Assembly (NCBI GenBank): GCA_943704425.1
Contig: CALSCP010001419.1
Span: 1 to 64,000 of the forward strand
DNA: 64,000 nt
Reading direction: 5' to 3'
Source: Ministeria vibrans ATCC 50519
Lineage: Eukaryota; Protista; Filasterea
Shown here: piece by piece, positions 17,286 through 30,047 of the stretch
How the letters are laid out: every line of letters starts with the position of its first letter
Numbering within the stretch: position 1 is the stretch's first letter
Made by a program: the position numbers and the translations under genes
The notes under the pieces: generated by a model
What the model was told of the DNA's origin: nothing
Seen by the model: the letters and a program-made list of their open reading frames with translations, nothing else
Database searches by the model: none

Positions 17286-20200
17286 TCAACGAAACTTGCG
17301 AGACGCAGCGCCCGAGCCACGAGGAGTGTTTTGCTTCGGCGTGAGCATGGGGGACTTGCCCTTGCTGCGGTGCGAGCGAGGCGTCGACCCATCTGTTGCC
17401 TTGCCGTCCGCCAGCATCAACGCTGCTGCCTGAACCTCAAGTAGACCTCGCTCGTACCCATCTAAGTGTAATATTAGCACCTTTTTACTCACACACACAC
17501 ACACACACACACACACATAAATATTACATAATTATTATATACAAATAACACACAAACACACCACAAAGCAGCACACACCATATATAAGTAGCATAAGCGT
17601 TCTTCTTACTGATTGCGTCCTTGAGCTCAGCAAACTCAAGGGAGCCACTAGTATCGGCATCGAGTGAGTCCCATACCAGTGCAAACTCCTCGTCGCTCAG
17701 CTCTACACCAAGCTCGGCCAGACCGTCGCGCAGTTGCTCCTCGCCCACCTCTCCCTTGCCCTCCGTGTCCCACTTGCGGAACAAGTCAATCGCCCGCTGG
17801 TTGCGTCCTCGCATGTGCCCGTCAATCGCTGCAAACACAGAGCCACGTCGATCTCGCACGGTCCGCTAAAAATATCAACACTTCTTTGGTCAATACATAC
17901 AGATTGCCTTCAAATATAATCTATCACTATCTCTATCACTTAATATTCACTTGTTTCTCTCTCTCTCTCTCTCTCTCTCTCTCTCTCTCTCTCTCTCTCT
18001 CTCTCTCTCTCTCTCTCTCTCTCTCTCTCTCTCTCTCTCTCTCTCTCTGTCCCCCCCCTCTCTTTCTCTCTTTCTAATCACTTACGGGCGTGTCGTCGGG
18101 ATGTTCGGCAATAGCAGGAGAGCGGTGCTTCTCATCCATGGCGAGCGCAGCGGCAAAGGCGCGCATGGCGTTGCTTGTGGGCTTCTTGCGCAGACCCGTG
18201 TCGATGCGTGAGACGCCCTTGACACGCACAGGTGCATTGAACACCTGCGTCTGCTTCTTATCGTTGCGGTGGGCCGTCTTCCAGGCCGTCAGAATCTGCT
18301 GTAGCTCACGGTAATCAATGGTACCGTTGCCGTCGTCGTCGAGCACACCCATCACCATGCGGAACTCACTCGTCGTCAGATGAACCTGGATGCTCTCGAG
18401 ACCCTGACGGAACTCGTCCGCTGACAGCTCCCCGCTCTTGTCGTCGTCAAAGCGGTTAAATAGATCCACGACGCGCAAGTGGGTGCGGTCTAGGTAGTCT
18501 TGCAGACCCTGCAGCGCCTTCTTCGTCGCTCGCACCGAATCCTCCGAGTCACCCTCCATCAGATCGTCGAGTGCGTCGCTCATGCTCGCATACCGCAATG
18601 CCTTGGGGTTCCAGCCGTGTAGTCCCGTGTCAACGCGCGACACGCCCACCGGACGGAACGGCTGGTCGAAGATGGGCACGGGCGGACGGTGCAAAATGAG
18701 ACCTCCCTCGAGATTGAGCCCGATACGACGCAGACGCTCCAGACGCTCGTCGCCAATTGTGCCCGCCATGGTCTCCAGTCGCATTTCCTGCACAAAGCGT
18801 GCCAGTTCTGGGTTGGGCGCCCACCCTTCAGGCACCTCGGCGTCGCCGTGCTCGTCTTGGAAGCGCTCCAGCTGTGCAAACATAAACTCAAAGCGCTTGT
18901 CGTCGTACTCGCTGGTCGCCGTAGTTGCGCCGCTTGCAAACAGTCCAACGCGCGTGAGCCACTTGGTACGCAGCTCGTCCAGCATCCCCTTCTCGTGAGC
19001 ATATCGCTGGCGCCTGATCCACGTCAACAGCTGGGGGTCCTCCTCGTCGGTCACGTTGCAGTGGCCATGCTCCTCCTTGTACGATCGCAGTTGCTGGTAC
19101 CACGACTGCCACGCCGCATCCGTGTCCGCATCACGTTGCTCCACATGGTGCAAGTGCCAGTGCGGCCACACCCGCGCCAACTGTCGTGTCCGCTCGCCCG
19201 TCAACTGTCCATTGCGATGGTGCTCGCGTTGCTTCTCGAGCCACAACGACAACTCCGTGTCTTGGATGGTCATGTCACTGCTTCGTTCCCGTCCGCCATT
19301 CTCGTCCAGGTACTTGCGCAGCTGTGCCACACGCGCATAAAACGCATCCAAATCGGCCATTTCCTCCTTGGTTGCCCAGCGCAGTCCAGCACCTTCCAGA
19401 GCCCGCACTCGCTTCTCCGGCAGCTTCTTGGCCAGATACAGACGCTGGTGGTCACGCGCAAAGCCCAGCACCTCGTCGTCGGCGACGCGGTGCAGTTGGC
19501 CACTGCGCGTCTCCAGCTGTGCCTTGAGTCGCGCGAGCAGTGCGCCAAACGCCTCGGAGCTCAGAGCACCTGCCTCAAGCGTACTCTTCTGACGCGTCGC
19601 ACCCGTCTTGCCCTTGCCGGCCTTCTTTGTTGTGGGCGCCAGCGAGTAGCCCGTGGCCTTGAGCTCCTTGGCACGCACCGCGCTCAGCTTGAACTTGGCA
19701 AAGAGCGTACGCTGCTCATTACCCCACGCCGCTAGCTCGGCATTGACACTTGCATCCACATCCGTCTCGCCCGGATGCTCCTCCATGTACTCCTGCATCT
19801 CTATGATGCGCCGTTCCCACTCACTCTTGGCACGCTTAAAGCGCGTCTGCGTCTTTGACTTGGCATCAATGAGCAGTGGATCGTCAATCATGCCAACACC
19901 CCGTCGGATGCGCTGTGCGCGGCCATAGCGCACGTGTGCCCACACATGCCACTTGAGCACACGCTCCACTTGAGCGTGTCGGTAGGGCGACAGCTTGCCA
20001 CCTTCGTGGTCCGCAAGAGTGCGTGTCCACCATGAGCGCAGTCCCGCATAGCCCTCGCGCCCCTCCTCGTCCGCGTCCACCGTCTGCTCGTCTTCGAGTG
20101 TCGTCGTGCCATGCTGGCGTGCATAGACACGCATCTGGCGCAGACGTGCCTCCCATGCGTCCGGGTCGCGGAAGCAAAAGCCCTTGGACTCCGCCTCGGC

Positions 20201-29200: not shown

Positions 29201-30047
29201 CATGGTAAACTCGACAAGCTCGCCTCCCTCACGGTTGTTTTCGGGCAACGCTGTCTTTGTAATGGTCAGCAGGGCGCCAACCACGCTCACTTGGTTGCCC
29301 ATGTCCTGTGACGACGTCGACGAGTGGTAATAGAGCGTCGTTGCCGAAGTCGCATCAGGTGTGAATGTGAAAAAGCTGCAAAAAAAAAAAAAAAAAAAAA
29401 AAAAAAAAACATACGTCAATATAGGAGTAGTAATAATACTATCAAAAGTCAACAAGAGAGGAGATAATGATGCAGGTGAGGATATATGTGCGTGTGTGTG
29501 TGTGTATGTGTGTGTGTGTGTGTGTGTGGGACGGTGTGTGGAATAACGGAGAGACGGCGTGGGGACGGGAGGCGGACCTGGCGTCGGCGGCAATGGGCAC
29601 GGTGCCAGCGACAAGGGCGGTCGCTGGTCTGACGGCACTTGAAGAGAGCGCAAAGGGAAATGCCAGCAGGTTTGCGCTTTCGACTGCCTCAAAGCGATAG
29701 CTCACGCCAACCTAATGCAATTGCGTTGGAGTGAGAGAGGAACACTTGTCAGTAAGTGGCATTTTCCTTTTTTTTTCTTTTCTTTTTTCTTTTTTTTTTT
29801 TAAAAAAAGGTTCTTTTTTTTGAGCGTGGTGTAATGAAGTCGGGTGTGAGTGTGACGGTCTTACCTCGAGTGAGAGAGGTGGACGTGGAAGTGCACCTGA
29901 GCCGGAGTCGATGAGAAACTGCGTACCGTCGTGGGTAACGCAAAAAGTCGTTGAGCTCGCTGAACACTGAGCATCGGCGACGTTGACAAGGCAGGCGAGG
30001 AGAGCCAGCAGGAGGCTGAGGATTGAAGGCACACGTCGAGCGATCAT
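17286..30047 (-). CDS. Giant (~4012 aa) membrane protein: signal peptide, adhesin-like Ig/DUF11-type ectodomain, FLC/TRP-like multi-TM domain, ~17 HA repeats, 2 EF-hand pairs
   Basis: Five phase-compatible exons 30047-29865, 29711-29578, 29375-18086, 17865-17610 and 17461-17286 total 12039 nt. Signal MIARRVPSILSLLLALLACLVNVADA; TM block including FYMQFMVLTALININFPALYVDF; repeats W...L..L..Y...HG..V.....L..W...QR.....G.L...R...L...G; EF loops DDDKSGELSADE, DDDGNGTIDYRE, DTEGKGEVGEEQ, DADTSGSLEFAE. Confidence 0.85.
17956..18048. repeat. (CT)n microsatellite in an intron
   Basis: Direct observation. Confidence 0.98.

Follow-up and report, generated by a model that had tools for sequence, protein, structure and literature searches.

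A putative nine-pass surface receptor gene of Ministeria vibrans with an adhesin-like stalk, a PF06011 membrane domain and a tail of HA repeats and EF-hands

Introduction

The PF06011 (Flc/Pkd2/TrpR-type) proteins are the fungal stand-ins for polycystins, and the family has hardly been studied outside fungi. Reconstituted fission-yeast Pkd2, an N-out/C-in protein, passes calcium on membrane stretch (PMC9727806), while the TrpR and Flc proteins have a role in calcium balance (PMC8618638, PMC9600462) and the latter have also been named as flavin carriers (PMC8618638). Here, we describe a gene with a membrane domain of this family in the filasterean Ministeria vibrans ATCC 50519. It lies on the minus strand between positions 30047 and 17286 of a 64,000-nucleotide stretch of DNA (contig CALSCP010001419.1, positions 1 to 64,000), which is called the window below.

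Like the fungal members of the family (S. pombe Pkd2, S. cerevisiae Flc1-3, A. nidulans TrpR and C. neoformans Flc1), the encoded protein is predicted to have its N-terminus outside and its C-terminus inside, with a cytoplasmic tail. However, the fungal proteins have about 700-800 residues, and their outer domain is a small, lipid-binding one of the ML-like kind, whereas the Ministeria protein has an adhesin stalk of about 1,250 residues in that place and a tail of about 2,100 residues with HA domains and EF-hands. The Pfam entry describes the HA domain (PF03457) as possibly nucleic-acid-binding, since it is found on bacterial helicases. Here the HA array shares the three-helix units of about 60 residues with the stand-alone arrays of this genome and with the solved unit 2KTA but, unlike the arrays of bacterial helicases, it has no helicase beside it and sits on the tail of a membrane protein.

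Results

Gene model and open frame

The greater part of the gene is a single minus-strand open frame, 29692..18074, which runs through 3,872 codons without an internal stop and ends at the stop at 18074; because of its length at about 60% G+C, it is not a chance frame. This bears out the initial annotation, which had placed most of the protein in one long exon. We number residues along this frame, residue i starting at window position 29692-3(i-1). Exons or exon parts served as search queries, and spliced joins were used only to check frame and length. From the N-terminus to the C-terminus, the gene is composed of the following features, in which a slash marks the exon end at a donor.

29865..30047, minus strand: exon 1 (predicted), with the ATG at 30047, a signal peptide with an A-x-A cleavage site and the donor GAG/GTAAGA
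29306..29864, minus strand: intron 1 (predicted), with an A-rich run, a CA repeat and a T33 tract
18086..29305, minus strand: main exon, ending at the donor CCC/GTAAGT; the open frame is unbroken up to 29692
26573..29302, minus strand: three DUF11-like two-domain modules, acidic and Thr/Ser/Val-rich (BLASTP and motif period)
25682..26560, minus strand: three Big_9/cadherin-like Ig domains next to the membrane (PF17963, 3.2e-18, three stretches; PF17892, 2e-4)
24407..25624, minus strand: nine-helix PF06011 domain with the family motif after helix 2 (Pfam, HMMER, AlphaFold, hydropathy)
22988..24406, minus strand: linker, a Gly/Ala-rich stretch followed by four copies of an Arg-rich P-D-G/R motif
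22745..22987, minus strand: acidic tract, net charge -27 over 81 residues, directly before the basic first HA units
18719..22714, minus strand: HA (PF03457) array of 16 clear three-helix units and one weak unit
18293..18640, minus strand: S-R-V-D-T-G-L motif, then EF-hand pair 1 (Pfam, motif reading)
18191..18211, minus strand: second motif, S-R-I-D-T-G-L, which opens copy 2 of the module
17866..18085, minus strand: intron 2 (predicted), GTAAGT ... TTTTTAG, with a GA microsatellite inside
17610..17865, minus strand: exon 3 (predicted), EF-hand pair 2
17462..17609, minus strand: intron 3 (predicted), GTAAGA ... ACTTAG
17286..17461, minus strand: exon 4 (predicted), basic, Ser/Pro-rich C-terminus and TGA stop

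The splice sites for exons 3 and 4 are canonical GT-AG sites, and the short motif with its EF-hand pair forms a module that is duplicated across intron 2, which supports the splice at that intron. An alternative start of exon 3 at the AG at 17829 was out of frame by direct reading and was rejected, and 17865 was used. At the other end of the gene, only 29305, 29623 and 29683 provide in-frame acceptors for the donor at 29865; when the exons were joined in a local check of frame and length with the acceptor at 29305, the model comprised 3,944 residues. The acceptor at 29375, behind the T33 tract, had been proposed as the start of the ectodomain. This position had to be given up, as it is out of frame with the 29865 donor of the signal-peptide exon and leads to a stop after six codons. 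The signal peptide of the initial annotation survived in part: the frame from the ATG at 30047 begins with a textbook leader, while the joining of this leader to the main frame is a prediction.

Membrane block

The membrane block alone (window positions 24323-25675, minus strand) matched PF06011, whose cut-off is 28.5 bits, with 32.8 bits. The likeness to the FLC/Pkd2 TRP-like family that the initial annotation had read from a motif is therefore upheld, if marginally. Hydropathy and the AlphaFold model concurred in nine helices, with a predicted local distance difference test value (pLDDT) of 74 and a predicted template modeling score (pTM) of 0.77. Searched exhaustively with HMMER, a set of 1.84 billion representative proteins yielded only 14 relatives, the best of them 33% identical; the named ones are Planoprotostelium PRP84198 and Capsaspora CAOG_08070. 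Eight relatives were scanned, and six of these exceeded the PF06011 cut-off, at 44-69 bits; in most of those scanned, Big_9 or cadherin-like repeats precede the membrane block. The family motifs are conserved in the alignment of the relatives, one of which, an environmental sequence, sits on a eukaryote-like contig.

A sequence search of the PDB with the membrane block found nothing, and Pfam gave no match to Ion_trans or PKD_channel. With no detectable likeness to the six-helix TRP/polycystin channels, "TRP-like" is to be taken as the name of the PF06011 family only. The ML-like (TRP_N) outer domain had no Pfam match either, and DUF11-like and Big_9 repeats stand in its place.

Ectodomain stalk

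The Thr/Ser/Val-rich, Ig-like ectodomain of the initial annotation resolved into the DUF11-like modules, which were recognized by BLASTP, and the Big_9 domains, which were recognized by Pfam. BLASTP matched the stalk to a 5,104-residue protein carrying PF01345 (DUF11) (P0015; 5e-28, 27% identity over stretches of about 790 and about 960 residues) and to two stretches of Capsaspora CAOG_08070 (P0004; 8e-15), and the sole matches of a search with the whole exon were DUF11-carrying proteins. The DUF11-type motif G-D/E-T/L-I/V recurs at frame residues 157, 465 and 768. Pfam had no match on the N-terminal stretch of about 900 residues (about 131-1040), and the hidden Markov models of PF01345 and of NCBIfam for DUF11/TIGR01451 did not match, so that the label "DUF11-like" is a BLASTP-based one. 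Toward the membrane, Big_9 already matched in the Pfam scan of the whole frame, and scanning in pieces gave it (PF17963) at 66.8 bits over frame residues of about 1045-1337, and NCBIfam gave a weak "tandem-95" match in the Big_9 region only. In total, the stalk is predicted to consist of about nine beta-sandwich domains. Its isoelectric point is 4.25 and it has 11 N-glycosylation sites; it is probably glycosylated.

Topology

The loops of the membrane block show a charge bias. With the N-terminus placed outside, 23 of the 125 inner loop residues are Lys or Arg, versus 7 of the 101 outer ones, and all three loop cysteines fall on the predicted outer side. Because of the loop charges, the loop cysteines and the glycosylation sites, the stalk is predicted to be outside and the HA/EF-hand tail in the cytoplasm. 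The C-terminal stretch of about 2,100 residues would then be cytoplasmic as a whole. The location of the HA repeats inside the cell, as the initial annotation had it, thus agrees with the predicted topology, the loop charge (23 versus 7) and the helix count of nine. The Capsaspora relative CAOG_08070 opens with a signal peptide.

Cytoplasmic tail

The long charged linker that had been noted after the membrane block was recovered as a region of its own. Its Arg-rich P-D-G/R copies lie 43-102 residues apart, within 22988-23992, and neither Pfam nor the protein atlas assigned the linker to a family.

The repeats behind the acidic tract scored as HA, and their number, given earlier as about 17, was confirmed. 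In the Pfam scan of the whole frame, PF03457 reached 225.6 bits (5.6e-68), and a profile made from the repeats themselves located 16 units at E values of 1e-15 to 1e-25 and one weak unit at an E value of 0.04, over residues 2327-3658. The net charge of the array is +33, with +10 and +9 on the first units. The profile of the 17 units matched 2KTA, the solved HA unit of Bacteroides vulgatus, at an E value of 0.0018; by structure, 2KTA matched with a Z score of 6.9 over 72 residues at 24% identity, and the next row had 4.7. It was the sole standout, and no DNA-binding fold stood out among the structural matches. In an AlphaFold model of four units, each unit is a confident three-helix bundle, while the linkers are of low confidence and the pTM is 0.32. 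These values suggest that the units are arranged like beads on a string rather than as a rigid solenoid. Foldseek with the four-unit model returned nothing, and a word-based search with the array found nothing at an E value of 1e-5. A helicase domain was absent from the gene and from ten other HA frames of the genome. In the literature searched, we found neither experiments on nucleic-acid binding by HA nor papers on HA function.

We also observed a higher-order duplication within the array (19955-21811, minus strand), in which the repeated block has three units. Units 5-7 and 9-11, linkers included, share 31.6% identity over 193 residues (E value of 2.5e-26).

The EF-hands reported before in the tail were found as one pair in the main exon and one in exon 3, both above the PF13499 cut-off. 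Pair 1 scored 35.1 bits, and its loops at residues 3749 and 3785 are canonical, each with 12 residues, Asp at position 1 and Glu at position 12. Pair 2 (exon 3, 17865-17610) scored 32.8 bits versus the cut-off of 30; by direct reading, one of its loops appears canonical and one degenerate. The two pairs are 30% identical (E value of 1.1e-7). Several EF-hand families matched in the whole-frame Pfam scan, and the protein atlas yielded only generic EF-hand clusters for the C-terminus.

Relatives, paralogues and other HA genes

The same order of DUF11-like repeats, Big_9 domains and PF06011 domain is found in Capsaspora owczarzaki CAOG_08070, a hypothetical protein of 4,954 residues that no paper we found names. 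Planoprotostelium fungivorum PRP84198, an "adhesin-like protein" of 1,652 residues, shares the order Big_9 to PF06011 but is without the DUF11-like repeats. Over 740-860 residues of the Big_9 region and membrane block, the two are 24-26% identical to our gene. However, what follows the last helix in them is a tail of only about 50-70 residues that lacks HA and EF-hands. Environmental protists also have the adhesin plus PF06011 core, and the Ministeria genome itself contains at least four paralogues with this core, 26-35% identical to our gene:

L036:2562-8153, minus strand: paralogue C952
L037:1-5109, plus strand: paralogue C507
L001:34-1548, plus strand: paralogue C1806
L038:4184-5578, minus strand: paralogue C2399

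Where the contig includes the end of the gene, the paralogue tails are Ser-rich and disordered and lack HA and EF-hands. We found the HA/EF-hand tail on no other adhesin-PF06011 member in this genome or in the databases; since the databases may omit this genome and its near kin, the uniqueness of the tail is provisional. As judged from sequence, the adhesin plus PF06011 core is a rare, unstudied branch of a known family, and the HA/EF-hand tail is the new part. The earlier description of the receptor as "undescribed" accordingly holds for the tail, while the core is shared with the relatives and paralogues named above.

HA domains are frequent in this genome, with at least 54 matches on some 25 contigs of the 29.7 Mb assembly. 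Nine other HA frames have no further Pfam domain, and none of them has a convincing membrane helix. The frame on contig C2223 (L030:2800-9345, minus strand) is of another kind. It has at least 2,182 residues and runs off the contig. Its teneurin-type EGF repeats are followed by a single strong membrane helix near residue 1505; an HA unit (34.9 bits) comes next, and behind it a PLAT-like stretch (22.2 bits versus a cut-off of 23). Both the nine frames and C2223 are consistent with an inner location of the HA array in the window gene. Among the 11 HA genes examined, only the window gene and C2223 have HA after a membrane part; HA is thus on the predicted inner tail of two large surface receptors in this genome.

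Public contigs and antisense RNA

The contigs of four public runs were compared with positions 24150-30149. No run is on record as RNA, and such contigs demonstrate the presence of a path, never its absence. Contigs of 10,741 bases (run X1) and 10,806 bases (run X3) covered 24150-28826 free of gaps, a range that takes in all of the membrane block and some of the stalk. If colinear, the X1 contig reaches 18086 and the X3 contig 18021, crossing the linker, the HA array and an EF-hand pair; 18086 is the exact predicted donor of intron 2, and 18021 falls in the GA microsatellite. Across the 6 kb, runs from three studies differ at five single bases, two changes being silent and three conservative, and they show no small insertions or deletions.

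Three segments were absent from part of the contigs: 28827-28879 (53 bases; X1 and X3, where the full path is present too and the shorter one is in the minority), 29359-29424 (66 bases; X1 and X3) and 30138-30189 (52 bases; X1, X3 and X5). Each of them reads GT..AG on the plus strand, and run X11 retains all three. We infer that X1, X3 and X5 are RNA runs and that they contain a spliced RNA of the plus strand that lacks a long reading frame and is antisense to the 5' end of the gene. The 53-base gap was also considered as a deletion in the gene; this was set aside, and the gap is read as splicing of the antisense RNA. Within predicted intron 1, positions 29541-29751 have full depth in contigs of the probable RNA runs, and both 29305 and 29865 are crossed by contigs without a break.

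Neighboring sequence

Further coding regions of the window are listed below.

1859-3340: malate synthase
4507-5616: papain-family protease with propeptide
44355-45605: eIF2D fragment
48616-49923: JAB/MPN protease with a USP8-dimer-like region
54275-58366: leucine-rich-repeat protein of 1,364 residues

In addition, a plus-strand frame at 16331-17203 ends 83 bases from the stop of the receptor gene (17286), so the two 3' ends converge closely.

Discussion

According to our analysis, the best, though tentative, reading of the locus is one gene for a nine-pass surface receptor, in which a stalk leads to a Pkd2-type calcium gate, the calcium is read by EF-hands, and the HA array is a docking platform; we give it a probability of about 45%. 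The stalk would transmit contact or pull, from a substrate, prey or a neighboring cell, to the membrane domain. By homology with fission-yeast Pkd2, the PF06011 domain may then admit calcium under membrane force, and the EF-hands would sense the incoming calcium. The HA array could offer cytoplasmic partners a multivalent docking platform, the availability of which would change with calcium.

Several observations weigh against this reading. On the whole 3,872-residue frame, PF06011 scored 22.1 bits, below the cut-off, which makes the match a marginal one. No solved structure resembled the membrane model; Foldseek and VIA-align returned helical-hairpin noise alone, with no TRP or PKD2 chain among the matches. 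To our knowledge, the HA domain has no known function or partner. The short-tailed paralogues and relatives work, and the tail should therefore be dispensable for the core function. At the 5' end, no junction from the donor at 29865 was found in the contigs of the four public runs, and the inferred antisense RNA lies across the signal-peptide exon, the intron proposed behind it and the first 500 or so coding bases; export of the N-terminus of about 1,220 residues is hardly possible without a signal peptide.

Some of these points also suit an adhesion anchor with no channel, which is possible but clearly less probable than the receptor. Here the PF06011 domain would be a stable polytopic anchor or a small-molecule carrier, the role first suggested for the Flc proteins of yeast, and the HA/EF-hand tail would tie the adhesin to cortical structures. 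The lack of a pore-like fold match, the marginal PF06011 score and the adhesin-type ectodomain are all in line with an anchor, as is the naming of Flc proteins as flavin carriers (PMC8618638). However, in vitro tests have been made on one family member, Pkd2, and it let calcium through when stretched (PMC9727806); the four EF-hands of the tail fit a calcium signal. It is unlikely, in our view, that the single-protein model is itself wrong, with two or more transcripts from internal starts, or with an orphan signal-peptide exon and a start at the ATG at 29302, in which case the protein would have another topology or would not be exported. In its favor, contigs show no junction from 29865 and run through both 29305 and 29865; the plus-strand spliced RNA overlaps the 5' end, and, by direct reading, the residues at places 3 and 6 behind the ATG at 29302 would be compatible with a myristoylation site. 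Nevertheless, the frame extends over 11.6 kb with homology-supported domains throughout and no dividing stop, and a junction that is missing from contigs does not count as an absent one. BLASTP pairs the residues just behind 29302 with an internal strand of a DUF11-type module instead of a leader, and the Capsaspora relative does have a leader.

The basic charge of the tail brings up another alternative, a membrane-tethered regulator whose HA array binds DNA or RNA and is freed after adhesion or calcium entry to signal to the nucleus. It would draw on the net charge of +33 with +10 and +9 on the first units, on the basic clusters in the linker and on the Pfam entry, which names HA as a possible nucleic-acid binder. 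We consider it very improbable, since Pfam gave no hit to a cleavage module, be it GPS/GAIN, rhomboid-type or another; 2KTA, itself of no known function, is the only match of the HA fold; and helicases are missing both here and from nine other HA genes. None of our analyses lent support to nucleic-acid binding, cytoskeleton binding or cleavage, the roles that the initial annotation had proposed for the array.

Returning to the calcium-gated receptor, a more far-reaching and doubtful proposal is that HA is a cytoplasmic receptor-tail module in this lineage and no accessory of helicases, and that the gene is a one-chain counterpart of polycystin-1/-2, in which the stalk would pull on a stretch-activated calcium gate of the Pkd2 type and the EF-hands would switch a platform of 17 HA units, masked at rest by the acidic tract, from bound to free and back. 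If true, this would be the first function for HA, and adhesion-coupled calcium mechanosensing would have been assembled independently outside animals. The 17 HA copies beside EF-hands on one receptor tail, with one copy on a second receptor, offer a concrete setting for finding HA partners. In the protist branch of PF06011, moreover, long adhesin stalks replace the small lipid-binding head, which makes a link from contact to calcium testable.

The comparison with the polycystin-1/polycystin-2 pair is one of working logic only, with no relation in sequence or fold, and Pfam found no REJ, GPS, PLAT or PKD_channel domain in the window gene. The polycystin pair combines a long adhesive ectodomain of Ig-like repeats with a calcium-permeable membrane part, and polycystin-2 has a C-terminal EF-hand. 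In the Ministeria gene, by contrast, the whole architecture is predicted to lie in one chain.

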